A stretch of DNA of 64,000 nt from Trichosphaerium sp. ATCC 40318 (GCA_038496445.1 JALMLS010000441.1:1-64000), one strand, 5' to 3'. Numbered from the stretch's first letter, positions 2,151 through 61,292 are shown. Made by a program: numbers and translations. The notes: a model not told the origin generated them from the sequence alone.

Positions 2151-2415
2151 GGTATTCTGCGTGCCGTTTAGACAGATTTACGCTAGGAAACCAACTTAAA
2201 CATAGCTCTTAAGGCATTAACGCACGTAAACAATGAACAGCTATTTGCTAGAGCAACCACAAGAAGGCTGAATTCAATTGTACGTCAAATCGTGCAACAT
2301 AAACAAAACCAGCCTGTCAAATGACAGAAGCTTCTAACGGTACGCTTGTTAACAATACCACCGCCCATAACGTTCAAACGGCACGTTAAATGAGTTGGTG
2401 TCGGCCAAACTACAA

Positions 2416-5400
2416 ATGGCGTTTCGACGAGAATCATATCCTATCTAGAGACTTACCACAGCACTTTAGGTGACCCGTTGGAGTACAAGATTGTTTGCGT
2501 AGGCCAAACATTTTTAAAAACGTCATTGGTCAGCTCTTTCGTAACGGAGACGCAACAAGTACAGGTCAGCCGCGTCGTTTCGTTTCAAAACAAAAATATT
2601 ATTTCGGCGCTTTTTTTCAAAAAAACTAACTTGACGAGCAGTATGACCCTATAATAGAAGAAAACTATACCAAATCTATAAAAGTAGATGATAAACTTTG
2701 TAATTTGATAATAACGGACACAGCCGAACAGGTATGAACCAAGTTTTTTAGTGTAAAACAAGAAAAGTTATTTTTGGAACAACCCTTTTTTTCTTTTTTT
2801 ATGTTCAGCTAATTCTGACTTTTCTTTCATTTCAGGATGAATTCTCGTACGTCTGAGTATCTTTTATATCTTTAATATGAAAGATTATGATATATTTCTT
2901 ACTCACAGCGAAAGGTCAATGCGAGAAATGTGGTTTAAGAACGGTGAAGGTTTTATTTTTTTCTACAATGTGAGGTCAAGGACAAGCCTTGAAGGACTTA
3001 AGTTTCAGTTGAACATGATGTTTAATTGTAAAGACAGTAGGGATATACCAGTTGTACGTTATAACGCTTACGTGACCTACAAGTGTTTTTATTTCTCTTG
3101 AACAACACGCCGTAAAAACCCGATATTTTATTAATTTAATTAGACTCTTTCGTTGATTTTTACGTAGGTCATTGTCGGTTGCTGTTACTCTCGTAGTGAA
3201 GTAGGCGACAGAGAAGTATCAAAGCAAGAAGGTAAAGCATTTGCTGCAGGTGTTTGCGATAGAGGTATTCCGTATTTTGAGGCTGACGGCGACACTTGGG
3301 TACTTTTTTCTTTCGAATATTACACCTTTTGTTCACTTCTTTTGATCTTTAGACTAATGTGGAAGAACCCTTCGAGGCTATTGTCAAACAAATAAACACT
3401 AGAAGAAGTCAACCAGCTATAAAGAAGATAGAGAACCCCAAACTACGGTTAAAGATATCAAAGAGAAATCTTCTGAGGATGGAAATCACAGACAAAGCTC
3501 AGAAACAAGGGCTGAAGCGTCTTCCAAAACCACTGATTCCTTACGAAAACAGCGTGGCTCATCGTATTTTGAAGCACTTGCGAGGACGTACGCGGTGACC
3601 TTCCAAAATATCGTTGCGAACTGACAATTGGTTTCTGTAGCGTTGGCAGAAGAAACCTCATTGCCGCCAAAGGTAAACGAAAAGATAATGACAGATGCTA
3701 TGGCTCAGGTGTTTGTGTTCACGGACAAGCCTACCAAGATTGCTGACCTGTGTTATCATGCTGAGAGCGAGTTCAAGAGCCTTAGGTTTCCTTTCGGAAA
3801 CAATAACAATCGGCCTCAGAGTCATGTTCGTGTTATAAATTTGAACTCTGGAACAGCAAAGTTTCAATATTCTAAAGCTGATATAATCATTCTTCATATA
3901 TCATCTGTAGAGTATCAGTGGGTATACGGTTATGTACAACATACGTTTTCATCGTCGTCTCCAATATTTATTATGCTACGGGAACCTAATAGCAAGATTC
4001 CTATTTTACAAGGTAAGCCAAAGATTTTTTTCAGTTCTGATGCACTTTCTTAAGCTCCTTTTTATTTAGAGATATCGATGGCACGTTGGTTGTCTGGACA
4101 TATTATTGATTGGCCTAATAAGTCAATAAAGTCTGTGAGAACTCAGATAATAGGCGTTATTCTTTATGAATCCAATTTGAAGCACGAGGCAGACTTCCTT
4201 GATTATTACAGAAATTGGGTTGAATCTAAACCGAAATTGTATCCTCCATTGACGACAACACGGCATCATACGCTCAAATTACTTGGTACTACACTTCTAG
4301 ATGTTTTTTTTAAAGTCTACAGTGATAAATGGCTGACATGAATCATTTTAGTTCTTGGTCATGGCGGTTGCGGTAAAACCTCACTCATCAACTTTTTGAA
4401 AAAAAAAAAGAATATAATTACACAGTCTACTATTGGTTTTGATAGTAGTTTTCTAAGGTAAACGTTGTTTTGACTTTTTGATGAACTTAATCTGTACTTT
4501 GTCCGTATGTTCGGTTAGATTAATGGTTTGTTGTAGCATACGATCCAATAAATTCACTGTTTATGACTTTGCTGGACAACTCGAGTATTTATCTGTCCAT
4601 AAGCACTTTATATCCGCAGAGTACTCAATCTACATCATAGTGGTACGCATAGAAACTCTAGCATCTATTGTCACGTGCTTGATCAAGAGTGGATCGCATT
4701 TTTATCCAAAATCTGTTTTGTTCTTCTTCTCGCAACTCATGGTATTCTTAGTTCGATGCATCACAACAATTTGAGGTTGCTATGAAACAAATTAAGCATT
4801 GGCTTGCTTTACTACGTGGTAAACTACCTAGCACAACACTCAATGCTATTTTTTTTGTTGGAACAAAGATAGACGAAGTCAATAATCGTAATACAATCGA
4901 TACCCTCCGCACTGATCTAAAAGCATTCTTGAGTCAGGAAACAGAATTTACAAACCATACAATTTCGTTCGTCTCTTCAATAACTGGTACTGCGCTTCAC
5001 CTTTTGGTAACATCTTGATTAACATGCTGTAGGTGAGGGAGTTACACAAATGAAGGGACACATAGCTGAAGTGTATAAAAGTATGAAGCCATTTCCTAAG
5101 GTATGTAAAAAAATGGCGGTAGAAACCGTGACGGTTTTTTATTGGAATGGAAAAAACTGAGATCTCACTTCTCAAATAGGTTGCAAACTTATGTCAAGTC
5201 ATTGCAGATACTGCTTCACAAGGAAATCATTGTAGAGTATTTACGAGTGTGTACGTGTTTGGCAAGACCGGTTGTAGTTCGCCTCAGCGTCTTGTTGTTT
5301 TGATTGCTTTTCTAAGTTCTCTTTTTAGCTCCGACTTTAAAGACATCTGCAAGAAAGAGTTCAAAAAGAGCCATACTGATTGGAACAGGTTAACTAAACT

Positions 5401-8400
5401 CGAGTTTGCGACATACCTTGAGTACTTGCATAACACTGGAGTGCTAATGCTAGATACTGTACGGATTAACTGTTTTGTTTTTGGTTCATCCCTCCTTCTC
5501 ATTTTTTTGGTTTTAGACGACTGCTATAATTTGTACAAAGCCAGCTATCATGTCTAAAATCTTGAGCAGTTTTATTGGACCTGATACACATATCAATCGA
5601 CTTCAGGAGCAGAAAGGAGGCTGTGGTGGTATGAGGAATCCAATAGTATCTTTAGAGGATGCTGTAAAACGTTTGCAACGTGTTCCTACTACTGATGGAG
5701 AACCATACAGCCGGCTCATTTGCTTATCGATTCTCAACTTTATGGAGCAGCTCAAGATCTGTTATATGCTGTCACCGCAAGAGGAGGTACGCTTGAAGTG
5801 ATAAGAGTGGAATCGTGTACTTATTGATCGATAGATATGTTACGGAAGACCTGGATACATGTTTCCAATGCTCCGACCAAAAGCTGAAATGGCCTATCTA
5901 CCTCCTGTAGTAGGTGATCGTGAGGGGTTACGTCTTTGGACGGCTAGACTTAAGTCCAGCGAAGATGTTAGTATTACCAGCGATTTTTTTAACTCGATGC
6001 AAGTTGAACTGAGAGGTAAGCAAAAGGATTGAAAGCGTTTTTTGCAGAGATTTACTTTTTTTCCTCGCAGATTTTCACGACTTCAAGTACAAGCTTTTCT
6101 TGAACTCTATGGTCCTTGCAGATAAACAAGGTAATATGGTGTTATTATACCACTCAGTAGATTCCATCATTATGATGGTGCGGGGTACTGATCCAACAAC
6201 TTGGGTACTTCCTATTTTTCTCATTTTCGTACTCTTTTTTATTGTTCTTTTTTATTCTTAACTTTGGTTTTGTTTTAGCTTTCTACGCTATATGCATTTA
6301 TTCCTCAATTGAAGAGAGCATCTTTTGATGTACTTTGTCCTTCGTGTACGGTATCAGGGACGTTCCAGTCATTCGATAGAAGCCATGTTTGTAAATCTTC
6401 TACAACAACGCTTACAGAACAGACTGTTGATCAAGGTGTTCCTATTGAAACTCTTGAAGGAGTTGTACCTAAATTATGGAGTCCAAAAGGAGGTATTACA
6501 TTGTTTTCTTTTCATACAGACTGTAGTTTAAGTCATTAATGTCGTTTCAATTAAGGCGTCTCTTTCTTTGAAAAAGGAGTATGGCAACAACAGCCTCAGT
6601 TGAAGTATACTGTTCTAGAGCAGTGTGAAGCTATAAAAGAGAGAAAAAGCGAGTACTTACGTGCTCGGGATATGTTCTACCAGTTTGTTGGTGTTGACAA
6701 TGCATCATTCTTTAAGCTTGATAAGGTTGTGTTCTTTCACAATCCTACTCTTGAAAATAAGTTTCATGCTTTTTATCAACGTGTTATATCACGTGTTGTT
6801 GACCAACATGATCCAAATGATATTGAGGATTCGACAGATGATGGTATGTACTAGCTAACAAGGTGTGACGATGCTAAGCAAAGTTTAGGTGCAAAGAAGG
6901 CTTGGAAACAATGGTTCTTAGAAAACTTCTAACAATGCCATATTCAAATTTTTTTTTATTTAGGATACTTGAAAAGTTAGATAGTTACGCTATGCGTGGG
7001 TCTGGGAATGAACAAGTGAATTTATTGCCAGGGTGCGTAACTTTGTTTGTCGTTTTGACTTTTTTTCTTACTTTTTTCTTTGTTTAGGTTTCATGGCACC
7101 ACAGAGGTATTTTTTCGCATATTCTAAGTCTAAGAAGGCTTTACTAATAAAGAGGTTATAGGAATCATCGTTTAAAATCGCTGAGAATAATTTTTTGGAG
7201 CCTCGAGAGCTCAACAATCAGACAGATCCTGGTTATTTTGGTACTTAATCGGCAGAATGTCAAACATGTCACTGATAGTCTTTGGTAGGTAAAGGCATAT
7301 ACTTTACGCAATCGCCAACGTATGGTATGGTTATATTCTTTCAAGTTTATTCTAAGCCCTAAATCACGTGTAGGATCCAAATACGCTGAACTAAAGCAAA
7401 AGACAGGTCAACACTGTCTCCTCATATCGGTACGGCAACTTTTTCAGAAAAAACAAAAATAGACACCCTCCCTTCCCTTTCTTTGTTAATGCTGCTCTTT
7501 AGTGGTTGATTATGGGTAAACCGTATCCTGTCATTGAGACACCGGATCCTAATGATCCAAATACGTTACTTGGAAAGCCATGCAAGGCTGGCTATGACTC
7601 TCATTATGTTGTTGTTAAAAAGGCTGGTAATGATATGATGTATATGCCATGTCGTCCTGCTGAAGAACCTGATGCAGATGAAGTTGTAGTATTCAACAAA
7701 GACCAAGTAAGAAATAGTTAAACGCACACCTTCTTGGAATTAATGGCTATTTAGATACTGCCGCGATACTTGGTGTACTACACTAGGAGTGGCACCAATA
7801 CGTTTGATACATTCGAACTTAGCTGGCGAGATTGTAGAAACTTGGTTTTGTGGGTAAGTACAGCAAGAAGAGATGGTCTTGGTCCGATACTGGCCACAGT
7901 AATTGCCACGACTTTGTGTTGAACTGCTTTTTTAGGTGGATGATAATCTAGCTGATGAGAATAAGTTCACTGTAAAAATGTTGGAGAAGGATCCTAAAGC
8001 GAGTGTCAAGGTGAGCCCCTGATATGAACATAAGTTGATTAGTAATGTATTTGTATGTAGGTCATACCCATGACGTCAATCACGGAATTGATGGCATTTT
8101 TGAAGCAGTATGCTGCCAGTAATATTAAAAAAATAAAGGTCATTACAAATCAGTACAGAGCGAATGATGGCAAGCAAGATGCTGCCAATAATCTTGTCAA
8201 GTACGTTTACCCATCAATTTTTATATGCGTTCTTGATTCAAAAAAAGAGCGCACAAAGAGCTGGTTGCTTATTTTTTTCCGTTTTTAGAGTTGTCAGGGA
8301 GAAAAAGAAGTGGAAGAAAATTCCAATATTGATATACGGCAACAATGTTGACAGCGCTGGTTTTCTTGTCAAGAAATATTCAAAGGTTAAGGCCACTACT

Positions 8401-8436
8401 AAGGCAGTTGACTTGCTTCACTTTTGTTCAAAGTAA
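2416..8436 (+). CDS. Roco-family multidomain protein: pseudo-Ras + degenerate G-domain-like region + Roc-COR + PARP-type ART + receiver-like domain
   Basis: Spliced in frame at the domain junctions. Ras-like: MATLGDPLEYKIVCVGQTFLKTS..YDPIIEENY..DTAEQ..GEGFIFFYNV. Roc: LKLLVLGHGGCGKTS, STIGFD, YDFAGQLEYLSVHKHF, FVGTKID, FVSSITG. COR: LEYLHNTGVL, FMEQLKICY, YMFPMLRP, CPSC. ART: FHGT, DPGYFGKGIYFT, GYDSHY, DADEVVVF, ILPRYLV. REC-like: VLWVDDN, VITNQYR, IPILIY. Stop at 8434-8436. Confidence 0.85.
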
Positions 8437-8799
8437 TCCATTTTCCTTCGCTGGTGTGTCGGTTCATTGTACAAAGAAAAAAATAAGAAATCAAGAAACA
8501 GATTAATACCTGTTGTCCAATAAAACAAACATGTGAAAAGAACTTTATCTTGTATTCAACTATGTGTTTTACATCATATATCTATGTGAGATTGGCGCCA
8601 TCATGTCCAGCAGAGGAGACTGTATTTTTTGGAGGTAATATGCCATTGAGGTCAACGGTGCAAAAGCTAAAAGGTTGTGTTGCAATTTCAAATAGTGCAA
8701 GGAAAACTCATAAGCTAGCTTTGGTACAAGGAGATAGGGACTCAATTCATAACATCGATACTAAACATGGCCCCAATGTTGCTTTTTAGTTCCTTCAAA

Positions 8800-9741: not shown

Positions 9742-12700
9742 ATGTCAAACCAGCACCAAGAACATGCGCTAACATTGGCAGGTATTAGCAAACCCTTCTT
9801 TAATACAATGACTATAACGATATTACAATAGCTGAACTGAAACTTCTTCAAACCTCCTATGATACTTCTATCATGTGCATGTACTTTGATTCAAAACAAC
9901 TTATAAGCAAAATAAAGGATACCACAACAGGTACAATTTTATCTGAGGTAGCAAAGGTTCACATGATTGTAGTATATAAACTGAAAAAGAAGCTACGTTG
10001 CCTCAAAACAGCTGATCAAATTCTACTGTGTTCAGGTTTGTAAATAGTTGTACATACATAGTAACCAATTTAGTTTATGCCAGTTTACCTATTATCAAAT
10101 CAATGTGTTTAAAGGCAGGGGCAGATATCAGTGCTCCAGATAAATACGGAAGAACAGCGTTACACAAAGCAGGTACTATTAATAAAAATACAATGTATGG
10201 TCTAACATTTCCCAGTATTTCATGGATACAACCATATTGTTGAATTATTGCTCAATGCAAACACAAATATCAATGCTGCTGATAAAGATGGGCAGACAGC
10301 TTTACATATAGCAGGTAGGCTTGTAAATAATATACAACGTAAGTTCTCACACTTTCCAGCACGCCATGGACGCAATAATACTGCTAAATTATTGATCAAT
10401 GCAAATGCAAATGTCAATGCTACAGATAGCAATGGAAAGACAGCTTTACATAAAGCAGGTACTTTTATAAACATACAATGTATGGTCTCACACTTTTTTA
10501 GCATGCCATGGACACAACAATGCTGTTGACTTATTGATCAATTCAAACGCAAACATCGATGCCGGAGATAAAAATGGTGAGACAGCTTTACATAAAGCAG
10601 GTACTGTCATAAACAAACACTGTATGTCCTCACACTTTCCAGTACACCGCAGACACCATAATACTGTTAAATTATTGATTAATAGAAACGCAAGTATCAA
10701 TGCTACATTTAGAGATGGATGCACAGCTTTATACAAAGCGGGTACTGTGTTGTAACAATTTATGTTCTCACATTTCCCAGCCTTTAATGGGCATAATGAT
10801 ATTGTTCAATTATTGATCAATGCATTTGCAACAATCAATGCTACTAATAAAGATGGACACACAGCTTTACACGCTGCAGGTATTCTGTTGTAAGATATAC
10901 AATGTATGGTCTAACCTTTTAGTGTTTCATGGGCACAACGACACTGTTCAAGTATTGATCAAATCAGATGCAAATATCAATGCTAGAGATAAATATGAAC
11001 AGACAGCTTTACACCTAGCAGGTACTGTTGTGCATATACCAATGGTGGCCTAATCTTTCCAGCATATCGTGGACATTATGGCACTGCTAAATTATTGATC
11101 AACGCAAAAGCAAATGTCAATGCTGCAGATAAAGATGGTCAGACAGCTTTACATAAAGCAGGTACTGTTGTACTATTGTAAGCATAAAATGTATGTCTAA
11201 CACTATGTAGCATGCTGTGGACACAATGACACTGCTAAATTATTGCTCAACGCAAAAACAAATATCAATGCTGCAGATAAAGATGGTGAGACAGCTTTAC
11301 ATAAAGCAGGTACTGTTGTACTATTGTAAACATGCAATGTATGTTCTCACACTCTCCAGTATGTCATGGACACATCAATACTGTTGATTTGTTGATCAAC
11401 ACAGATGTAGACCTCACTGCCACAAACAAAGATGGACAAACAGCTTTACATATTGCTGGTTCTATAAACATTTTTGAGTTATAAAATATCTAACGCTTGC
11501 TAGTTGACTATTGCCACAGTGGAATAGCTGAGAACTTAATTAAAGCAGGTGCAAACGTTGAAGCAGTAAATAATAAAGGATGGACACCTTTATATTTTGC
11601 AGGTGATACTAGGATACCAGAAGACTAAGCAGTATTTTAACTCTTTATGTAGCACAATATAGACCTACTGAAGTATTTGTGAGCTTATTACCTGAAAGAG
11701 ATATTTTTCCACGTGCCATGACTGAACAGAGGTTTGATTTCAAAACAGTATTTTTGAAGGTTGTTGACAATGATCCTGCATACACCAAAGTGTTTGAGAC
11801 TCTATTGGCGCACCTTCCAATCAATCAACAAGGTCATTCACTATGGACTTCATATGCATATATGACAAGTCAGAAATACATTTTTGCAACTCAATTTCCA
11901 GAGTGGAGATCCAAGCTTGCAAAATGGTTACAATACTTGGTACAACTTTCAAGTCAAAAGTATTGTACTAATCGAATACCAAGCCAACACGTTCTTATTT
12001 TAAACTTGCAATACAAAAGGGTATTTGTTCATTAATCTGTACTTACAATCCCATCTTTGTGCAATCCCCAGTACTAACACGTGTGTTTCAAGTTCAAACT
12101 GCTCATCATTTTGTTAATAGAGCTTTTGGGTTCAGCAAGGAGACCTAATGGAAGGTATTCTGTGTGATTTACCACATAGTATGTGGAGCGAAAAACAAAA
12201 CGTAACTGGTACTATTGCTCAAATGTGTGAAGAGGATGGGCTGTGTATAAACTCCATTCAACAAGATAAACAACATTGTGCGTGGTTTAATACAAGAATC
12301 AAAAGTGTGGTGTTTACTGTTATTATAGCATTTGTAGACCCTCACATGTGCGGATATTGTATTGCACACCAACCTATCAGAAGTACTGTATGTCTAAAAG
12401 TTTTTTATTAAATACTTTTTTAACTGTTGATAAAGCGTATGGATATTGTTGGGAATAATCTCAAGTGTAAGATTGGTGCTTATGCTATTCAGCCTTTTAT
12501 ACCCAATAGAGTTTTATGTGACACTGCAGCTGGTACAATCAATACTTTTCTCCAAATAGATTGATTTTCAACAAGGATTAAGAAGTAAGACATCATGGGA
12601 CTTAAACCCTCGATTGGAGTATGCACGTGCCTGGGACAGATCAAACAACAAGTAGTGTTTTAATGTTGTTTAATTCATTTTTATTTTAACAGTTCCTAAA

Positions 12701-14113
12701 GAGGTTTTGTGGAAAAAGCAACTCATTACAGACTATTGGACCTTTTTGACCAAACCGACACTGTAGCCAACAGAGAGCTAAAGGTTCTTCGTAAACAGAT
12801 GTCAAAAATGCATGGATATGACCAAGTCACTGTTAAATCAGCATATCTTGTTTGCAATGATGTCTTGCTTCAGAACTTTGGCATGTACAATACAATAGTT
12901 AAGCATAGGCACCAGTATGTAGACATAAATGTTTACGGCTATTGATTGTTACCTAGAGAACTGCCCAAGTTGTTTTGTAGGAATGATTGGGAGCATGATG
13001 CCCACAACACTAAACGGACAAGCGTTTATAGCAAGTTTTCATCTTTGATTGCTGGATCAACCAACGCAGAACAGGTGCTGTTGTAATAACAACCCCTATA
13101 TGACTTATTAATTGTTCAGTTACCTGTTTTGTTAATGGCACATGGAACACGTGCAAAAGCAGCTTATAGTATTGTAAAAGCTGGATTTGGAACTGTAAGT
13201 GCATTGGATGCTGGATATTATGGACAAGGAATCTACTTTACAGTACTATTGTGTTCACTTGGTTTTTTCCTCTAACATGTTACCACAGAGTAGTCTCACA
13301 TATGCTGCCTCATATGACGAATCTCAAGGTGAAAAAACACTTATTCTGAGTTTAGTCACACCTGGAAATGTGTATCCTGTATGTACATGGGTTTGTTTGT
13401 TTATTTACAGCTTTGCTAGGTAATAGAAAAACCTACAGATCCTATTAATTTTCAGGGTAAGCCTATTAAACCTGGATACCAAAGTCATTATGCAGTTGTA
13501 AACAAATTGGGGCAAGCCGTGAAAGAAAATATTGACAAATGCAAATGGGATGAGTTGGTTGTAGCTCAAGGTAAGTAGTCATACGCCAACCATTATTGGT
13601 TTTATTTATAACGTGTTAATTTAGATGTACAAGCTGTTGCACGTTATGTCATAACAGTTGTAAAGAAGCCACGGAAACGAGTAATCCAGAACAAAAGCAA
13701 AGGAGCAAAAAAGAAAGCAAACAAACCAAAGCAGGCAAAGATTATCAAAACGATCGGAAGTGAAAACCTAGAAAACAAAGAGGTTGATAAATTGGAAGAT
13801 GATAGCGAGTCAGATGAGTTTTCTGATGACGACTCATTTAAAACTAAACGGTAAGGCTAACAAGACAGACTAGCTTAGTACTTATTTACTACAAAGAAAA
13901 TTATGGGCAGCTGCAAATCCAAATCAACTTGATCAACCGAGTGCACAAGATCAGCTTGTAATATCGTTAACACAAGAAGTCACAAAACTCAATCAAGAAA
14001 ACAAGGAAGCAAATACCAGAATCACGAAATTGGAGGAAGATAATGCAAATAAATGCAATCAAATTGCTGAACTACAAGCCCGAATTGCAATGCTTGAGAG
14101 CAAGAGTTCATAA
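9742..14113 (+). CDS. Ankyrin-repeat + PARP-type ADP-ribosyltransferase + C-terminal coiled coil (paralogue A)
   Basis: ATG 9742 (MSNQHQEHALTLA). About 11 ankyrin exons (GxTALHxA/xxGHxxxxxLLIxxxAxINAxDKDG) at 10074-11602. ART motifs: LMAHGT, DAGYYGQGIYFT, LVTPGNVYP, GYQSHY, WDELVV, QAVARYV. Heptad-rich end ...IAMLESKSS* (TAA 14111-14113). Confidence 0.88.
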
Positions 14114-14528: not shown

Positions 14529-16967
14529 TTAGCGTTTTCCTCTATTTTTTGTAGAGCCACTGCTTTTGCGGGTATTTTTCTTATTACGTGATCCACCTGT
14601 ATTGTTTGTACGTACAGGGGCGCTTCTATTTTTTCTAAATATTAGCTTGAGTGGTGTTCCCAAGAATGAGAACTCATCACGAATTTGACGTTGTAAGAAG
14701 CTAATATATTGATTTGAAACAAGCTCTGGATGGTTCACAAAGAAAACAAAAGCAGGACCCTAATAAGGTACCCAGGTCATTAGTAATCGTATCAAAGATG
14801 GTTATGTAACGTACAGCCATATTTCCTTGTGTCACGTGACGAATCTTAAGCTTTTTAAGGCCAAGTTTTGGAGCTCCTCTGAGTAATGTAGCTTTTTCAA
14901 CAAGTCCAATCAAGTTGTTTGTTGAAATCTTTTTCCTCCTTTCTTTGGCTACTAGCAGAACATCGTCCAATAAATTAGGTACATTATAACCTAAGCAAGC
15001 ATAAGGACATTGAACACCATTAAAAAAAAGTTGTCAAAAGTCAGGGAGGCGTTCAGAAGTCGAAAAAAAAAAAGTTAGGTGTACCAGTTTTAGCAGATAT
15101 GAAGTCTATTGGGACAAAGTTTATCCACTCAATATGCTCTTGAAGTGCCTTACGATAACCTTCTTCAGTTGGTCTGTTTTTCTCACTTACTTTATCAGTA
15201 AGATCCCACTTATTTACAACAGTGATACAACTCTTGTACTGATCAAAAATATACGTCAAAAGCTTGTTATCCTAAAAAAAATTATTAAACACTCCGATAA
15301 AAAAAACTCGATCCAGGAACACGTGTTTAAAAAAAAGTACCTGTTTTACTGGTCCTTCAACTGCATCTATCATAAGTAAAGCAATATCAGAACGATCAAC
15401 AACCTTAAGAGCCCACATGGCGCTAAACAATAAATCAGTAAAAAAAGTAATAAATAAAAAACAGTTTCTGTACCTTATCTTCTCAATAGGCGAATCTTGA
15501 CTCTTTGGTCTCCTTACACCCGCAGTATCAATAAGTGTAATAGGTGTTTCCTTATCACCCCACTTTAAATGCTCATCAACAGGATCCATTGTTGTACCAG
15601 GAACATCTGAAACAACAGATCTCTCACGACCAGCAATATGATTCAAAAGACTAGACTTGCCAACATTAGGCTTACCAATGATAGCAACCTTAACATCCTT
15701 TCTCTTTGACTCATCATCTGACTACAACAATAAAATAAGAAAAACAAAACCAGTACACAGAAGGACAAAGACTAAAGGCCAAAAGGCCAAAAACAAAGAA
15801 AAGAACAAAAAAAAAACAAAAAAGACATAAAAACTTACAAATGGCATGAACCCCATACGCTTCGCTTTCTCCGTGAAGTTTTCCAATAAATTAACAATAC
15901 CCAAACCATGTATACCCGAAATAATTTCAGGTTTTCCTAAACCAAGACGAACAAATTTTGTGCATCTTCTCCCTATTTTTAAATTAGTAAAAGGTTTTTT
16001 TTTTCACGTGAGAAACACGTGCACACAAAAAAAAAGTTGCGTTCATAAAGTATGGTTTACCATTGTAGAGTTATCAGCTTTATTCGTTCCAAGAATTACT
16101 GGTTTTCCTGATTTCTTCAAGAGACGAGCAAGGAGCTTATCATGAGGGTGAATACCAGATTGACAATCTTTGAAAAGAGAAGATTACCAATCAGAATGTT
16201 ACGATTAAAAAAGTTGTAAATTTTACCTGTCATGTACAAAATAATATCAGCTTCGGATATAGCAACCATAGCTTGCTCATGAATTGACTTGGACCTGTCG
16301 AGATACGGTTAAAAAAAAAGAATTAAAAAATGTCAAAAGGAAAAAAAAAACAAAAGACCGTCGCGTACCAGTTGTCTGTCTCACCAAGCATACCACCTGT
16401 ATCTACCAATAGAAAACTCCAATCTAGCCAATCACATACACCATAAACACGGTCTCTAAAGCAGTTATGAGCGACAGACATAGAGAGACAACCCAAAAAA
16501 GAAAACACCTGCCAGTTTGACATTTTCGTTTTTATTTTCATTACCTTGTTGTCCCAGCAATGTCTGAAATCAATGCCTTTGAATACCCCACCAATCTATT
16601 AAATACAGTCGATTTACCTACGTTTGGACGGCCTACTATCGCAACTAAAGGCTTGAAGTATTTCTTCGTTGGTTCATCGAATCCAACTACGCTAAAACAA
16701 CTACCGTTAGCGAATAGAGTACTATACCGCGTTTTTAAAGTGCTTTTGAGGCTTTTTGGAAAGTTTTGCGCTCAGTGAGCTTACTTACACTTCTGAGCCT
16801 GGGACTTCCCTATCTTTTATGTTTGGAGAGTCTTTGAAGTCGAATTGAGATGGTCTAAAAGGCATTCTTCCTTTTGTATTAACTGTTGTACTACGTTGTT
16901 CTTTTGTCTTGTCGCAGTAGCATCGCACTCTTACAACCTTCGAAAACTCTATATAGCGTAAAAACAC
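14529..16967 (-). CDS. der: Der/EngA double-GTPase ribosome-biogenesis factor (probably mitochondrial); exact start uncertain
   Basis: GD1: [31 protein letters not shown]2: [44 protein letters not shown]-like end: [26 protein letters not shown]-terminal extension before GD1. Confidence 0.9.
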
Positions 16968-34506: not shown

Positions 34507-35796
34507 TCATTTCTCCATGTTTTTTATCGTCAACCCACATGTTTTGTATACAAATCGATTTTTTTTTGTTTGTACACCATCAAACCATGTGGTTTGATTC
34601 ACTAATCGTCCTGTTTCATGCCAAACCTTTTTTTCGCCATGAAGTTTACCATCAACCCACATGCTTTGTATCTTTAGTTGCCCATTTTCATACCACTCTT
34701 TCATTTCACCATGTTTTTTATCATCAACCCACATGCTTTGTATCTTTAGTTGCCCATTTGCATACCACTCTTTCATTTCACCATATTGTATATCATCAAT
34801 CCACATGCTTTGTGCACTAAGTTTTCCACTTTCATGCCACTCTTTCTTTTCGCCATGTTTTTTATCATCAACCCACATGCTTATTTCCTCGAGCTGTCCA
34901 CTTTCATACCAATCTGTTTTTTTACCATGGCATTTACCATCAACCCACATGCTTTGTGACCCGAGTTGTCCATTTTCATACCACTCTTTTTGTTCACCAT
35001 GACATTTACCATCAACCCACATGCTTTGTGACTTGAGCTGTCCATTTACATACCACTCTTTTGTTTCACCATGTTGCTTATCATCAATCCACATGCTTGT
35101 TGCCTCGAGCTGTCCACTTTCATACCAAGCGTTTTCTTTACCATGACATTTACCATCAACCCACATGCTTTGAAATTGTAGTTGTCCATTTTCATACCAC
35201 TCTTTTTGTTCACCATGTTGTTTATTATCAACCCACATGATTTGTGCCTCGAGCTGTCCACTTTCATACCAAGCTTTTTCTTTACCATGACATTTACCAT
35301 CAACCCACATGCTTTGTGACTCGAGTTGTCCATTTTCATACCACTCTTTTTGTTCACCATGTTGTTTATCATCAACCCACATGATTTGTGCCTTGAGCTG
35401 TCCACTTTCATACCAAGCGTTTTCTTTACCATGACATTTACCATCAACCCACATGCTTTGAAATTGTAGTTGTCCATTTTCATAGAACTCTTTTTGTTCA
35501 CCTTTTTTCTTTCCATTTATCATCATACATTGTAGCTTGATATTTCCATTCTCATACCAAACTTTACATGGACCTGTCCTATATTGTTTAATACATACTT
35601 TTCCACTTTTATACCACCCTATCCATTGTCCTTTTCTTTGTAGTGTTGCATCAAAATGTGTATTGATTGCTGCTCTTTTTGAGAGTGTATGGAATTTTGT
35701 GAATGCTTCAATGTTGAACGTGCAGAAATATGTTTGAATTTCACATGGAAGATCAAGTACAGTAAAAGCCAAGCTCTTTGTTGAATTTGTTTCCAT
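34507..35796 (-). CDS. Intronless F-box-like + MORN_2-repeat protein
   Basis: N-terminal VLDLPCEIQTYF (F-box-like), then ~14 repeats of 24 aa (WYENGQLxxQSMWVDGKxHGExKE). The 72-bp units form a 144-bp higher-order period. Confidence 0.9.
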   Translation of the reverse strand: METNSTKSLAFTVLDLPCEIQTYFCTFNIEAFTKFHTLSKRAAINTHFDATLQRKGQWIGWYKSGKVCIKQYRTGPCKVWYENGNIKLQCMMINGKKKGEQKEFYENGQLQFQSMWVDGKCHGKENAWYESGQLKAQIMWVDDKQHGEQKEWYENGQLESQSMWVDGKCHGKEKAWYESGQLEAQIMWVDNKQHGEQKEWYENGQLQFQSMWVDGKCHGKENAWYESGQLEATSMWIDDKQHGETKEWYVNGQLKSQSMWVDGKCHGEQKEWYENGQLGSQSMWVDGKCHGKKTDWYESGQLEEISMWVDDKKHGEKKEWHESGKLSAQSMWIDDIQYGEMKEWYANGQLKIQSMWVDDKKHGEMKEWYENGQLKIQSMWVDGKLHGEKKVWHETGRLVNQTTWFDGVQTKKNRFVYKTCGLTIKNMEK

Positions 35797-52847: not shown

Positions 52848-55800
52848 ATGGCAGAACCACAGCGTGAAGAAACTCAAGATCCAAATGGTTGAAAATAACG
52901 CTTTTTTTATAATGTTGGTAACAATAACATTTATTCATAGTTGAGTGGAATATGTGGCATCCAATTATCTGCGAAAATGAACTGACCGCAATTGAACTTG
53001 TGTGGTTTTTTGCAGGTATGCAATATGTGGTAAGCATAGTTAACCAGTTGTAGTAAGAAATGGCTATGGAGAAATTGTTTCATCGCTTATTAAAGTGAAC
53101 ATAAATGTTGATGTTGTAAATTCTAGCAGAAAGACAGCTTTAATTTATGCTGGTAATGTCACATATGGAATACAGCGTGGGTTTACTAACATTACTATGT
53201 AGCCTGTAAAAAAGATTATAAAATTGTATCAATGCTAATCAAGGCCGGAGCAAATATTGAGGCTGTTGATGAATATGGAAACACAGCTTTGATTAGGGCG
53301 GGTAATACCATTGAGATACAAAATACAACTTGATACCACTCACACTATTAGTAAACAATGGAGATAATAAAACTGTATCAGTGTTAATCAAGGCTGGAGC
53401 AAATATTGAGGCTGTTGATGAATATGGATACACAGCTTTAATTTATGCAGGTAATACATATTGAATACAAACATGTTCGCTTACATCACTATTTAGCCAG
53501 TAAGGGACATTATGAAACTGTATCAGTATTAATCAATGCTGAAGCAAATATTGAGGCTGTTGAAATAGATGGAAACACAGGTTTGATGAGGGCAGGTAAT
53601 AGCATTGAGATACAAACATGTTTGCTCACATTACTATTTAGCCGAATTGAACCAATATGAAACTGTATCACTATTAATTAATACTGGAGCAAATATTGAT
53701 GCTGTTGATAAATATGGAAACACAGGTTTGATTCATGCGGGTAATAGCATTGAGATACAAACATGTTCGCTTACATTACTATTTAGCCAAAATGGGACAT
53801 TATAGAATTGTATCACTATTAATTAATGCTGGAGCAAATATTGACACTGTTGATGAAGATGGAAACACAGCTTTGATGAGTGCAGGTAATGCCACATATG
53901 GAATACAGCATGGGTTTACTAGCATTACTATGTAGTTTGGGAAAATCATGATAAAATTGTATCAATGCTAATTAAGGCTGGAGCAAATATTGAGGCTGTT
54001 GATGAATATGGAAACACAGCTTTGATTAGGGCGGGTAATACCATTGAGATACAAAATACAACTTGATACCACTCACACTATTAGTAAACAATGGAGATAA
54101 TAAAACTGTATCAGTGTTAATCAAGGCTGGAGCAAATATTGAGGCTGTTGATGAAAATGGATACACAGCTTTGATTCAAGCAGGTAATAGCATTGAGATA
54201 CAAACATGTTTGCTCACATTACTATTTAGCCAGTAAGGGACGTTATGAAACTGTATCAGTATTAATTAATGCTGGGGCAAATATTGAGGCTGTTGATAAA
54301 AATGGATACACAGGTTTGATGAGGGCAGGTAATAGCATTGAGATACAAACATGTTTGCTCACATTACTATTTAGCCAAAATGGGATGTTATGAAACTGTA
54401 TCAGTATTAATTAATGCTGGAGCAAATATTGACACTGTTGATAAAGATGGAAACACAGTTTTGATGAGTGCAGGTAATGCCACATATGGAATACAGCATG
54501 GGTTTACTAGCATTACTATGTAGTTTGGAGAAACCATGATAAAATTGTATCAATGCTAATCAAGGCTGGAGCAAATATTGAGGCTGTTGATAAATATGAA
54601 TTCACAGCTTTGATTAGGGCAGGTAATAGTATTGAGATACAAACATGTTCGCTTACATCACTATTTAGCCAATAAGGGACATTATGAAATTGTATCAGTA
54701 TTAATTAATGCTGGAGCAAATGTTGACGCTGTTGAAATAGATGGAAACACAGCTTTGATGAGGGGAGGTAATAGTATTGAGATACAAACATGTTTGCTTA
54801 CATTACTATTTAGCAAAAATGGGACATTATGGAATTGTATCACTATTAATTAATGCTGGAGCAAATATTGACGCTGTTGATAAAGATGAAAACACAACTT
54901 TGATTTGGGGAGGTAATAGCATTGAGATACAAACATGTTCGCTTACATTACTATTTAGCCAATATGGGACATTATAAAACTGTATCACTATTAATTAATA
55001 CTGGAGCAAATATTGACGCTGTTGATATTAATGGAAACACAGCTTTTATGTGTGCAGGTAATGTCATTATATAAGATACAACATGTTTGCTCAAGAGAGG
55101 ATTAGCACACAAAGGAGACAAAAAAATCATGTCAATGTTAATCTATGCTTATGCAAAAATTTACACAGTTGGTGAAGATAGAAACAATGCTAATTCGGGT
55201 ACTGTACTCAATCAAAAAGTAAACCATCATTATTTGCCTTAACTGTTTTTTGGTAGTTATATCACCAGACAACACAATGTGGCAAGACTTACTTTTTTTG
55301 TTATTTAAGCAACTAATTTCAAATGCTCTTGGATCTGTTGTAGCATTTGTAACTTTTTTACAATACTGTCCAAGTGGTAAAGAATGCAAAGTAATGTGGA
55401 AATCTTGTTTGTCAAACGTATACTTGGCTTCTGATAAACAAACGCTTTTTGAACATATTAAGCAATGGCTTCCATACTTGGTATGCCACTATGGAACAAT
55501 ATGTTAGTTCTTACTAATCATACAACATTTAGCCAACACGGTCTTATTTTAAACTGGCAATGGAAAAAGGCATTTGTTATTTAATTGGTTATATTTATAT
55601 AGCCAGATACAGCTATGATAATGTACCTTTACCACAAATCATTAAGCTAACTGGTTTATCAGGGATTATTTTGGAAACAAGATGGCCTATTAATGCATGG
55701 TATCTTTAGAGATATGCCTGATGACACATGGGACAAAAACCTGGATGGGCAGTTTTTTACATATCGCAATCATCTATCATTTATCACAGGTACAACAAGT

Positions 55801-57576
55801 TACTGTCTTACAAATACTAAAAAATATAAGAATTAAAACATGAAAACGGATGGGATCTTAATCCACAATTGTATTTTGCACATTCTTGGGACAGATCTAA
55901 AAGCATGTACGTCTGTTCAATGTGCCATTGTGGGTATCTTTATTTATTTGAAAAGAGGAATTATTACAAAAGCGACTCACTATAGAACATTAAATCTTCT
56001 TGATGAAAATGACAAAGTTGCTGTCAGAGAATTGAAAATCCTACAGCAAGATATGTCAAAAATGCATGGTTATGACAAATACAATATTGTTGAAGCGACT
56101 CTTGTTTACAATGAAATCTTGACAGAAAACTTTGGTCGATCCAACAAAATACTAAAGCATAGGCATCAGTACGTTTTTTTGTAGTTTATTTAGTCCTTAC
56201 ATATTTTAGAGAACTGCCTGCATTTTTTAAAAAGCAAGATTGGAAAAAAGATGGCAACAAAAAGTACAAAGAGAGCGTTTTCATTAAATACAATGCCATA
56301 CCCACTCAGGAATATGAAAGTACATACAATACAGACTATTTAAAAGAAGACAATACAGAAGGACAGGTGGTGTTCATCAACGATATCTTACTCTCACACC
56401 TGTTTAGTTACCAGTGATATTGATGGTTCACGGAACAAGTGAAAAAGCAGCTTACAGTATTGTAAAGGCTGGTTTTGGAACTGTGAGTGCTTTGGATTCT
56501 GGATACTATGGTCAAGGCATCTATTTTACAGTATGCAAAAAACAGTCACATTCCATTGCTGATTCCACTATAGCGGAGTATAAAATATGCGTGTTCATAT
56601 GACACTGGAGGAACCAAAGAAAAAACAGTTATTTTGAGTCTTGTCACTCCTGGCAACGTATACCCTGTACATTAACAAAAGTTTATCATGTTCTTTATTA
56701 ATTGATGACTATAAAAAAGGTAAAACCAACCGACAAGTTAAGAGGACAACCGATAAAACCAGGCTACCAAAGTCATTACACATTGGTTGATCACAAAGGT
56801 AGACCTGTCACAGAAGATAAAGTTACTAGTGCAGTGTATGATGAACTTGTTGTCGGACAAGGTACACCCAAAGAAGAATGTAACGATCATAAACTAACGC
56901 TATGCAATCAGATACTCAAGCTGTTGCTCGCTATGTTCTCAAACTACTACCAAAAGAGCAGAGTAAGAAAAGAATCAAAACAAAAAAAACCAAGAAAGGA
57001 GATAAAAAACCAAAGAAAGGGGATAAAGTTTCAGAGCTAGTTGGTGGTTCCGATGATCTTTCAGATGATGAAGAAAATTTTCACAATAGTAGCAGGTAAT
57101 CTATTTCTTTTCTTGTTCTTACTTATTGACTTACCAGGAAATTGTGGGCTGCCCGCGATTTGGACACAACTGATGACCAACAATCAAGTACCAATAATGT
57201 AAATCTCGAACTAGAGTCTTCACAAAAAACACAATGTGAAATCGAGAAACTAAAGAAAATCAACGTAAATATGAAGGAACTTCATGAGAATATACATGCA
57301 AGGCAACAACAAGATATAGCCAGCTTAGACCAAGACAATATCATCTTACAAAGAAACGTCAATCACCATCAAAAAGAAAATGCCAACTTATCTCAAATTA
57401 TCAACACCCTAAAGCAAGATAATTCGAGCCAGCAACAAGAAATTACCAACTTATCACAAATTATCAACACCCTAAAGCAAGATAATTCAACTCAGCAACA
57501 AGAAATTATCAACTTATCACAAACCGTCACTACCCTACTTGCCAAAATAGCCCACCTTGAAGGTAGCAAGAAGTAG
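52848..57576 (+). CDS. Ankyrin-repeat + PARP-type ADP-ribosyltransferase + coiled coil (paralogue B)
   Basis: ATG 52848. Fourteen 99-nt ankyrin exons plus one degenerate exon (~53054-55198). Linker shared with paralogue A (WLxYL/PTRSYFKLA; KATHYRxL..MSKMHGYD). ART: MVHGT, DSGYYGQGIYFT, LVTPGNVYP, GYQSHY, YDELVV. 21-aa coiled-coil repeats; TAG at 57574-57576. Confidence 0.9.
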
Positions 57577-58071
57577 CTCCAATGTACAAGCATCCCGTAG
57601 CACAAATAAACATTTCCTTTACTTATTGTACTCTTTATTTGCACATGTTAAAAAGATGATGTAAATGTTGCTGTGTGCATCAATTTCAATGTGCCTCTGT
57701 TATGACCCAACAATTATTAGAGGTTATATCATTGTCCAGATGAACTTTGTAATAGTAAGTTCTGCTTTAACTGGCGCTTCTGTGCTTTATGTGTCTAACG
57801 GTGGTTGCTGCACTACTAGATCAATTATCAATCCCTTATCATTTTATCTTGTGTTGTAGGATCACGTGGGAATGAATAAAACAGATCACAAACTGGAGTT
57901 AACAGTAGCAACAGCACTTATTAAGAGCGCCTAACACAGTGCTGTACTAATACATGAGCTAGCTGGTAAACATTGCTCACAAAGTCAAATCAATATCCGC
58001 GATGTGAATTCAGCTAATATGACTTTTGCTTGAACAATAAGAGTCCAAGTCACAACAAAACCAACCCTGAG

Positions 58072-58925
58072 ATGGCCGCTAATGGAAACGATTCTAGCCT
58101 TATTGATATCATGCCTCTAGAGCTGCTATGCGCTATTTTTACTCAAATGGCATCAAATAAGACTCGCTGTACTGCAGGACAATGTTGTAGGCTTTTTTCT
58201 ACTATAATACACGATTATGTTGGCTATTACGCAGTTAGAGTTACAGAACAAAATTGTAGGCAAATTATACCTTGTAAGGCTATCATACGTCATTCTATGA
58301 TAAGATTTTACGATTTGGCTCCTATATTTCTATTCACTGGTTTAAAAAAAGTGCGTTTTTCTTATGGTAGTGGATCACGTGTCACGGACGAGATTGTTCG
58401 ATGCTTAACAGGGGTTCACACTATTAATATAACATCTTGTCGGTTGATAAGTGGCAAAAGTCTGAAGGCATTCCGTGGCGCACATACTGTTATTCTTCAA
58501 GGATCATGTGATTTCAATGGCAAAGGAAAAACTACTTCAAAGGTGTTCACACCCTTAGATTAGGTTTTTATCCAAGGCCTACCTACTCTGGTCGTTGGAT
58601 AGCTTCACTAGCAGGTATACATACATTGGACATTGGCCTATCAGTGAGTAGTATTGGTATTAAAAACGAACATATAGCAGCACTTGCTGGTATCTCGGAA
58701 CTGGTTTTGTCAGGTGCTTCATTCTTGACTGATGAGGGTATAATACCTTTGAAAGGTATTAAGATATTACGTATTAGTAACTGTAGTGTTACTGCAAAAG
58801 GTATTCATTGGTTACTACCTGAGCTTAAGGTTTTTGACATCTATGAGTGTGATACTATTTCTAAAGAAGAATTTAAAGATATCTTAACTAAAATGTTAAC
58901 CTACAAAGAACAACGTACGGACTGA
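58072..58925 (+). pseudogene. Intronless F-box + LRR gene interrupted by a single-base frameshift (pseudogene or sequencing error)
   Basis: LIDIMPLELLCAIF (F-box) and LTGVHTINITSC LRRs. After GGAAAAAC (~58525-58532) the repeat continues in another frame (NYFKGVHTLRLG..LAGIHTLDIG) into ORF 58626-58925. Confidence 0.75.
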
Positions 58926-59396
58926 CTCTTGACAAGCTTTGTGATATCACAATCAAACATAGGAATTAGTTTGTGTTATTTTTGATGAATATAGTGACTG
59001 TAAATAGAGAAAATTAATAAATAAACACTGGGAAGGAACATTTCCGAAAAGTTATTTTCTTACTTATGCTATCGATTTCCCCTTTCAATTACCTGAGAAA
59101 GAACTGTGATTCATGTAAATTAATAGCCACTGTAGCGTCCTACTAATTAAGAACAGCGAAGTATGCGTACATGGGCATTGTAAAAAGTAATTGAAAAAAA
59201 AAAGCATTCAAAATCTCGAAATGTTGTTCTAGCCTAAGAAACTTTGTCGTGTTTTTAAACGACTAAGCTACATGCATTAGCAAACGCGGTACCTGAGTGA
59301 TGTAAAACCTGTCACAACAGGTTTTCGATTCACAACAGATAAGCTAGCTTTCACATGTATTTCTTTGTTCACGGTTAGTTAATAATCGCACGTAGA

Positions 59397-61292
59397 ATGT
59401 TGTACACGGCCATAATTTTCTCTGTATGCGCTATTGTATTCATGTATTGGCTGTTTCAACGTAAAACAGATATTCCAGGACCAAAAGGATATCCTCTTAT
59501 TGGTAGCTTATTAGATGTAATAAAATCACCTGAAAACCGACTTGATTTATTCGAAGAGGCACGTTTAAAAAAACAATTTTCAATCAAAACCCACGTGATA
59601 TTTTTTTTTTGACATTCTATGTTAGTGGCGGCAAAAATATGGAGATGTTTATCAAGTTAGCGTGTTTGGAAAGAAAATGGTGTTCATTTCTGATTTTGAA
59701 GATATGAGGACTGTACTGAAGCATAAAAACATCTTTATATCAGACATAGTGTCAAACCCAAGAGCAGTGGAGGTTCGGCTTGAAAGTATCTTTTTTTTTT
59801 TTGGTTTTTTGATTTTTACCACGCACGTGCTTTTGATCTGAATCGATACTAGTCACTTAAGCTTGATCTTTCTTTGGGACTTCAAAAGGGTCATAACTGG
59901 AAGGTGATGAGAAAGTTGGTAGCCCCTGGTTTTACGAATAAATACTTGAGATCCAAGTTTGATGGGATTTTGCATGTGCTTGCATCACAGACATATGAAC
60001 TTGAGAGCTTTGCAAAGAGCGGTGAATGTATAGTTGATCCTTATAAGTTTACATCAAGAATGACTCTTGGCGTTATATCTCAATTACTTTTTAAGATAGA
60101 CAAGTTTGAAGGTAAGCTCTTTTCATAGTATTTATTATTTTGAAAATCTCAAAAAAAAAGATGAACAGAAAGAGCGTCAGTTGCTTGATGCTTTTGGAGC
60201 ATTATTGGTTGTTCTTGTAAGAAGAGACTCGTTTGCTTTTGATTATTGGAAAATACCTTTATTGGTGCCAAAGGTACCAATATTAAACGGCTTTTTGGAA
60301 CAGTCTCTGACAACTTGAAAACAAGGAGGAAAAAGCCTTTATGCATTCAATGGACAATGTTGTCATTCCTTTCATTAAGCAAGTCATGGAGAAAGCAGAA
60401 AATAACCTAAAGATTCCTGGATACAAACCTCAAAATATAGTAGAGGTACTCGAAATACAACACCAGAAGCTAACAAATTAAATTTTTTTAGGAAATGCTT
60501 GTTGAAAAAGATGGAGAAATATGGACTTCTGAAAGCATTTTGTCTAATATTCTTGGTATCTATCTTGCAGGAGTTGAAACAACTGCTTCTGTGATGGTTT
60601 CTGTGATGTATGTTTTGTGCAAATATCCTGAGTTTCAGGACATCATCTACAACGAGGTTGAACCAATGATGAAGAAAGAAAATCCCGATTTCGCTGATTT
60701 TATGAATAACACAAAACTCCTGAACTTTGTGAAAGAAGTACTTCGTCTATACGGACCTATACTCTTGTTATTCAGAAAACCGATAAAACCATATAAATTA
60801 CAATCAAAACATGGGAGTACGACTTATAAACTTTCGCCAAAAATTCTCTTTTTTTTCTTACCTTATATTTTTTAACACGTGGGTTTTTCTGTAGCGTTTG
60901 AGATTCCTGCAGGCGCTAATGTAATTCTTAATACTCAATCTGGTTACCAAGATGAAACTAACTATGTAGATGCTAAGATTTTCAACCCAGATAGATACAA
61001 TAGCCCAGGTAAGATAACAACCTCGTTGCATTTCGTTTTTTTCAAAAAAGACAGAAACAGAAATCTAACCTTGTTAGGAGTCACTCCGTACTTTGGGTTT
61101 GGCGGTGTTCCCCGCATTTGTCCAGGCCAGCATTTGGCTATTATAGAGTTAGCAATACTATCTGCAGTGATGTGTTATCACTTCCGTATATCACCTGCAC
61201 CTGGATGCATTCTAGAAGACGTAAAGTTTGTTTCAAAGCCTGCAGTAAGATGCAAAGGTCTTTCAGTGCAACTATCAATGCGTCAAGTATAA
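59397..61292 (+). CDS. Cytochrome P450 (membrane-anchored)
   Basis: N-terminal TM segment + PGPKGYPLIG; I-helix LAGVETT; KEVLRL (ExxR); FNPDRY; haem motif FGGVPRICPG. Confidence 0.95.

Follow-up and report, generated by a model that had tools for sequence, protein, structure and literature searches.

The stretch analysed here, which we call the window, is a 64,000-nucleotide (nt) piece of DNA from Trichosphaerium sp. ATCC 40318 (GCA_038496445.1 JALMLS010000441.1:1-64000). Positions 2321-8436 on its + strand are, in our gene model, a single, intact 29-exon eukaryotic gene for a protein of the Roco family. The explanation that best accounts for the observations as a whole, and that we hold to be reasonably probable, is a Roco protein encoded by one gene, in which a Roc-COR switch controls an ADP-ribosyltransferase (ART) of the PARP type, with a pseudo-receiver and dead G domains in the same chain.

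Gene model and continuity of the reading frame

We built the gene model by hand. The region 2300-8600 was read in six frames, which revealed about 28 open blocks on the + strand with short gaps between them, and the blocks were joined through GT-AG introns by reading the DNA directly. The base composition is about 37% G+C. A first model of 29 exons, encoding 1360 amino acids (aa) and free of internal stops, was refined in two places. The final coding sequence of 4119 nt encodes 1372 aa with zero internal stops, and all its introns are GT-AG and 46-130 nt long. Donors are mostly GTACG, GTACT or GTAAG, and acceptors are mostly TAG or CAG behind a T-rich tract. On a position weight matrix (PWM) the model donors score 4.6-11.0, against a mean of 0.1 (SD 4.1) for all GT dinucleotides in the region, a contrast that is indicative only, the matrices having been built from the gene's own internal introns and trained on those same introns. 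GTACG and GTACT donors are unusually frequent in this gene. Its features, from 5' to 3', are the following.

2321-2339, + strand: probable first coding exon (ATG, 19 nt), tentative; donor GTACGC at 2340, PWM score 8.5
2470-3400, + strand: pseudo-Ras domain (aa ~8-183); exons 2470-2558, 2642-2731, 2836-2846, 2909-3053, 3168-3299 and 3353 onward
3400-3700, + strand: charged linker (aa ~184-255), read from the sequence inside exons 3353-3587 and 3641-4012
3700-4285, + strand: plausible second degenerate G-like domain, G' (aa ~260-430); exons 3641-4012 and 4070-4285
4352-5100, + strand: Roc GTPase domain (aa ~431-608); exons 4352-4457, 4537-4642, 4752-4986 and 5033-5100
5180-6600, + strand: COR-A and COR-B (aa ~609-985); exons 5180-5458, 5517-5786, 5835-6015, 6071-6204, 6279-6492 and the start of 6556-6847
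6600-7800, + strand: PARP-type ART domain (aa ~985-1235); exons 6556-6847, 6964-7032, 7088-7106, 7162-7240, 7289-7324, 7374-7429, 7503-7706 and 7755 onward
7810-8433, + strand: pseudo-receiver of the CheY fold (aa ~1240-1372); end of exon 7755-7853, then 7936-8010, 8061-8200 and 8289-8436
8434-8436, + strand: stop codon TAA, read from the sequence
8519-8524, + strand: AATAAA, a possible polyadenylation signal 83 nt past the stop, read from the sequence

Several domain boundaries sit inside single exons. Exon 4070-4285 ends in the first half of the beta-1 strand of Roc, and exon 4352-4457 supplies the rest of that strand together with the P-loop. In exon 6556-6847 the post-COR motif of the COR-ART linker occurs together with the first strands of the ART. 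In exon 7755-7853 the ART finishes with its last strand (ILPRYLVYY) and the tail domain opens with its first. Several independent proteins match the predicted one co-linearly. P0006 is an uninterrupted open reading frame (ORF) of 920 aa that fills a metagenomic contig of 2950 nt, and it aligns in one high-scoring segment pair to aa 431-1357 of the first model, from Roc to the C-terminus (BLASTP, E 1.7e-78). Clydonella sp. ATCC 50884 contributes three Trinity transcript isoforms (P0045, P0134 and P0135), which align over Roc-COR-ART with E-values of ~1.5e-68 to 2.3e-68. P0001, a 302-aa protein from a Trichosphaerium transcript, is 50% identical over the ART and the tail (E 5e-102 in BLASTP with the spliced protein). 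The strength of the BLASTP matches to P0001 and P0006 argues that the spliced protein is not a product of chance, and the boundaries inside exons, taken together with the co-linear proteins, lead us to read the region as one gene.

The ART with its receiver-like tail (ART-REC) also occurs in databases as short stand-alone proteins or fragments (P0001, P0008). This speaks for a different origin of the long frame, namely two or more adjacent genes (a pseudo-GTPase, a Roco and an ART-REC gene) merged across short gaps; a decaying pseudogene would be a variant of the same objection. We regard this as extremely improbable: every gap between coding blocks is 46-130 nt long with GT-AG ends and keeps the frame, domain boundaries lie within exons, no stop interrupts the 4119 nt, and the same fusion recurs in independent single ORFs and in transcripts of other species. 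An earlier note on this DNA had proposed an architecture of the form pseudoRas-G'-Roc-COR-ART-REC in one gene, which is borne out by the 29 GT-AG exons and by the co-linear P0006 and Clydonella transcripts. The motifs that it had listed as in frame (GHGGCGKT, DFAGQ, TKID, FHGT, GIYF(T) and DADE) are all present in one open frame.

The two places of the model that changed during refinement are the start codon and the intron between COR and ART. The earlier note had placed the start of the gene at 2416, and this has to be given up: the frame opened by the ATG at 2416 closes at a TAG after 10 codons and lacks a donor in phase with it. The ATG at 2390, used in the first model, needs a donor GTTGGT at 2394 that scores -3.9 on the PWM. 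The ATG at 2321 is likelier than 2416 and is probably the start codon; its exon splices in phase to the acceptor at 2469, giving a predicted N-terminus MTEASNG-DPLEYKIV. The opposite-strand coding blocks upstream of the gene have open frames up to ~2047, which leaves about 270 nt before this ATG. For the COR-ART intron the first model used an acceptor at 6576. The intron most likely ends at 6555, because this choice restores the LWxPK...F(Y/F) motif conserved in the homologues; it adds seven residues. Two micro-exons are required, one of 11 nt (2836-2846) and one of 19 nt (7088-7106), the latter carrying the catalytic His motif FHGT, whose residues are contiguous with their neighbours in homologous transcript-derived proteins.

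Domains of the predicted protein

The Roc domain has its motifs in frame: G1 is GHGGCGKT (4357-4380), G3 is DFAGQ (4565-4579), G4 is TKID (4863-4874), and a G5-like SSITGEG follows. Two window exons match the Pfam Roc family in register (15.8 and 18.9 bits), and the homologue P0006 matches it with an E-value of 1.7e-16. The COR region carries the conserved LWxPK...F motif. In an alignment of the window exons with the Roc-COR parts of seven homologues (A3), the window exons coincide with the conserved blocks YLHNxG, VCxxPxxLSKxLSxF, FPxLxP, VRGxxP and LCPxC. The A3 profile matches LRRK2 at residues 1333-1713 (E 1e-28), CtRoco at 39-449 (2e-22), MbRoco2 (2e-21) and LRRK1 (1.5e-20), in each case through COR, whereas plain Rabs reach only ~1e-13 and match over the G domain alone. 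A Roc-COR profile free of window rows, composed of other organisms only, matches the window protein at aa 430-978 with an E-value of 5.5e-79 (Z = one million). By analogy with known Roco proteins, this Roc-COR would be expected to bind and hydrolyse GTP and to dimerise in a nucleotide-dependent manner.

COR-B closes with a conserved cysteine motif of the form LCPxC...C(x)nH-like (CxxC...C; window 6320-6400, aa ~915-935), which is also seen in the A3 homologues. This motif may be a small zinc-binding knuckle that separates COR from the ART.

The motifs of the ART are likewise in frame, with FHGT at 7089-7100, GIYF at 7294-7305 and DADE at 7671-7682 (Glu codon 7680-7682). The catalytic triad is complete, comprising H1090 (FHGT), Y1125 (GIYF) and E1211 (DEVVVF), and an extra Tyr is found eleven residues past Y1125. 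An exhaustive protein search with exon 7503-7706 recovered 133 relatives, the best match being 58-67% identical over the exon. We used 38 ART-tail sequences, none of them from the window, to make an ART-REC profile (A1), which matches the window protein at aa 1068-1371 with an E-value of 7.9e-100. The same profile matches PARP2 (E 6.6e-9), with the family columns WHG, GIYF and DE(I/V)V aligned to HG, GIYF and NEY of PARP2. The fold was judged by proxy on P0001, which is 50% identical to aa 1055-1355: the best solved folds for its AlphaFold2 model (predicted local distance difference test score, pLDDT, 88.4) are PARP1, PARP2, PARP4 and ZC3HAV1. The ART fold that had been claimed for the C-terminal domain is thus recovered in the model of a homologue. 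The intact H, Y and E and the second Tyr argue for a working enzyme.

The tail domain behind the ART is predicted to be structured as a receiver. The AlphaFold2 model of the homologous tail domain (pLDDT 91.2) is a (beta-alpha)5 fold, a five-stranded beta-alpha sandwich, and its best matches in the PDB are the receivers RcpA, Rcp1, CheY and RR468, with template modelling (TM) scores of 0.57-0.64. The Pfam family Response_reg (PF00072) has no match in the window exons, P0001, P0008 or P0006, and a tail-domain profile compared with PDB sequences retrieves no natural relative, only de novo designed proteins. We located the functional positions by where the strands end in the model. At the end of beta-3, Asn 1307 takes the place of the phospho-acceptor Asp (ITNQYR in the window, ITNRxR in the family), the Thr/Ser of beta-4 is replaced by Gly in the window and by Cys in the family, and there is no Lys after beta-5. 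The acidic pair that follows beta-1 survives (WVDD). On this model the tail is a pseudo-receiver with a receiver fold. Of the earlier claim of a receiver-like tail, then, the fold stands, while the Asp, Thr and Lys of phosphotransfer are missing.

The closest structural neighbours of the tail are C-terminal domains of rotifer-dominated clusters in AFDB and the ESM Atlas (TM 0.74-0.83), some of which carry the arginine-ART PF01129; one PARP-catalytic fragment and one NB-ARC protein are also among the AFDB neighbours. Since the fold is found C-terminal to PF01129 ARTs as well, the pseudo-receiver accompanies two unrelated ART classes. This suggests that the modelled fold is an ART-associated accessory domain outside Pfam.

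The N-terminal part of the protein appears to contain two G-like domains without nucleotide-binding motifs. Exons 2642-2731 and 2909-3053 match consecutive parts of the Pfam Ras profile (28-58 with 17.9 bits and 62-96 with 14.9 bits), each falling below the 21.6-bit cut-off on its own, and the 11-nt micro-exon 2836-2846 encodes DEFS at the position of the Ras EEYS. G1 has become GQTFLKTS, with no GK, G3 is DTAEQ, and the G4 and G5 motifs have given way to CCYS and DGD. The domain is without the P-loop GxxxxGK[ST], the NKxD and the SAK motifs, and because these are missing we regard it as a pseudo-GTPase. The sequence YDPIIEENY, close to the effector loop of Ras (switch-I-like), is kept. The charged linker that follows (aa ~184-255) has no family match in Pfam. 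G' has neither a Pfam match nor a P-loop; its look-alikes by protein-atlas features are CENP-M (a pseudo-GTPase), Arf, Ras and RagA, with scores of at most 0.88, below the guide value of 0.9, so that they serve as a lead only. A second dead G domain at aa ~260-430 is plausible.

Proposed mechanism and alternatives

Roco proteins couple their nucleotide state to dimerisation and to the activity of an output domain (Wauters et al. 2019, PMC6337361), and in bacteria the C-terminal effector domain of AP-GTPase/COR proteins varies (Kaur et al. 2021, PMC8195603). By analogy with these bacterial proteins, LRRK2 and CtRoco, we propose a GTP-gated ART. COR would relay the nucleotide state of Roc as a change of conformation or between monomer and dimer, and this change would release or position the C-terminal ART, which would then move ADP-ribose from NAD+ onto a target or onto its own protein. 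The pseudo-receiver, as a constant partner of the ART, might regulate or dock it, and the dead G domains might serve as an input or recognition surface.

Several points weigh against this proposal. The control of the ART by GTP is carried over from other proteins by analogy, and the catalytic activity is predicted from intact residues. The first exon and the two micro-exons were placed by splice signals and homology only. Pfam is blind to COR, PARP and REC on single window exons, and these assignments came through family profiles and a 50%-identical homologue. The distant homologues P0111, P0090, P0038 and P0065 are without the catalytic His, and because several distant homologues have lost it, the domain can evidently persist as a non-enzyme. 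The H-Y-E triad cannot separate mono- from poly-ADP-ribosylation, and the target is not named by the sequence.

The same four homologues, which have lost the catalytic His or Glu and kept both the domain and the pseudo-receiver, bear on another role for the ART. It could act as a sensor that binds NAD+, ADP-ribose or an ADP-ribosylated partner and informs Roc-COR, the output then being GTP-dependent scaffolding or dimerisation; Rocos of the MFHAS1 type do act without an enzymatic output (PMC6337361). We find such a role very unlikely here, as H, Y, E and the second Tyr are intact both in the Roco gene and in its closest relatives P0001, P0008 and P0023.

The loss of G1, G4 and G5 in the pseudo-Ras domain, with YDPIIEENY kept, brings in a further possibility: an immune receptor resembling the NLRs with an integrated decoy, whose dead Ras-like domains would lure pathogen effectors directed at small GTPases. 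Once an effector had bound or modified this bait, Roc-COR would flip, and the ART would execute the response, either by attaching ADP-ribose to host or pathogen targets or by using up NAD+. The decoy reading gains from the occurrence of the same cassette of ART and pseudo-receiver behind N-terminal modules of differing kinds, among them PDZ, SH3 and, in Clydonella, ankyrin, from two more ankyrin-ART genes in the 64-kb window, and from the proposal that ROCOs are brown-algal immune receptors (PMC11378527). On the other side, the Rocos of Dictyostelium have equally varied domains and serve ordinary signalling and development (PMC6337361). We consider the decoy a serious though unlikely possibility; it would refine a Roc-COR switch acting on an ART and does not exclude it. 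The module swapping at the N-terminus fits a signalling or defence receptor family. In its most extended form, which we think quite unlikely, the whole X-Roc-COR-ART-pseudoREC class would consist of amoebozoan intracellular immune receptors, analogues of NLRs with decoys, in which Roc-COR replaces the STAND ATPase, the ART executes and swappable N-termini sense effectors, the pseudo-receiver being perhaps a new regulatory or acceptor domain linked to ADP-ribosylation.

Relatives, genomic context and known systems

The nearest relatives of the gene are amoebozoan (Trichosphaerium, Clydonella and Mastigamoeba), and by sequence it belongs to a family present in Amoebozoa. A homologue search with the ART-REC part of P0006 gave 6 matches. 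Pfam detects Roc together with PARP, with or without COR-A/COR-B, in P0006, P0045, P0062, P0111, P0134 and P0139, so that the combination of Roc, COR and PARP that the earlier note had suggested looking for does exist in homologues. The long ART relatives carry Pfam PARP with Roc, COR-A or COR-B, ankyrin, SH3 or PDZ. Unannotated Roc-COR-PARP proteins are found in the transcripts of Clydonella sp. ATCC 50884, in Mastigamoeba balamuthi (m51a1_g4989 and g10957) and in metagenomes (P0006 and P0062). They share the order Roc-COR-ART with the window protein, most of them have the same pseudo-receiver tail, and they are 25-28% identical over ~900 aa. They differ in their N-termini, which vary and include ankyrin repeats in Clydonella; some are without the catalytic His, and none has been named or functionally described. 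The absence of a repeat sensor, which the earlier note had stressed, is accurate for the Roco-ART gene of the window. It does not extend to Roco-ARTs in general, since the architecture is not unique and some relatives have ankyrin repeats.

The view that no Roco with an ART effector has been described also held. No paper on such a fusion came up in full-text literature searches that paired Roco, Roc-COR or 'Ras of complex' with PARP or ADP-ribosyltransferase. A 2019 review of Roco proteins distinguishes three groups by domain topology, and 'ribosyl' occurs nowhere in its text (PMC6337361). In a 2014 survey of PARP architectures no GTPase is mentioned. What is new is the Roco with an ART output as a described architecture; unannotated examples are already present in public protein sets.

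The window contains three ART genes in all. Positions 9800-13520 (+ strand) hold a multi-exon gene with many ankyrin exons (Pfam Ank, E 1e-12) followed by an ART region; the ART at 13117-13512 is 28% identical to that of the Roco gene (tblastn E 2e-6), making this gene an ankyrin-ART paralogue. A second ankyrin gene with a related ART (56429-56854, tblastn E 9e-7) lies at 53440-57600 (+ strand), its ART being followed by a coiled-coil-like stretch. A single-exon ORF of 429 aa made of MORN_2 repeats (Pfam E 2.8e-58) occupies 34507-35796 (- strand), with no adjacent Roc-COR. Proteins with an F-box and LRR_6 are encoded at 61781-62998 and 58030-58920, both on the + strand (Pfam LRR_6 E 1.6e-26, F-box-like E 2e-4). 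By eye only, a cytochrome P450-like gene was seen at 59380-61290 and a Der/EngA-like double GTPase gene at 14530-16770 (- strand). Scanning the window for Rfam families and for tRNAs gave no match.

Interest in Roco proteins comes mainly from LRRK2 and Parkinson's disease, and how Roc-COR controls an adjacent enzyme is still debated. A natural family with the same switch and a different enzyme would provide a second, independent setting in which to ask which signal Roc-COR passes on. We know of no other GTPase-coupled enzyme of the PARP type, and the Roco-ART would be the first. The family also adds a candidate class of defence or signalling receptors in amoebae, and the recurrent pairing of the pseudo-receiver with ARTs of two unrelated classes suggests that ADP-ribosylation systems have an accessory domain not yet described.

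In LRRK1, LRRK2, DAPK1 and the Rocos of Dictyostelium a kinase stands C-terminal to COR. The predicted protein shares with LRRK2, LRRK1 and the Dictyostelium proteins GbpC and Roco4 a common plan, a central Roc-COR, an enzymatic domain and one further C-terminal domain. It differs from these Roco kinases in having a PARP-type ART in place of the kinase and a CheY-fold pseudo-receiver in place of WD40, and in its two putative dead G domains, which replace the N-terminal ARM/ANK/LRR repeats. The Roco of C. tepidum (3DPU, 6HLU) and Roco2 of M. barkeri (4WNR), from which the model of a GTP-dependent monomer-dimer cycle derives, have the Roc-COR core in common with it; they are LRR-Roc-COR proteins without an enzymatic output. 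With PARP2, PARP1, PARP4, ZC3HAV1/PARP13 and PARP12 it shares the ART fold and the H-Y-E positions at ~15-22% identity, whereas the helical regulatory, WGR, zinc-finger, macro and WWE domains of the PARPs are absent and the ART is fused to a GTPase switch. The tail shares the (beta-alpha)5 fold (TM ~0.6) and the acidic WVDD pair with the receivers CheY and Rcp1/RcpA, and differs from them in having Asn for the phospho-acceptor Asp and neither the conserved Thr/Ser nor the Lys.

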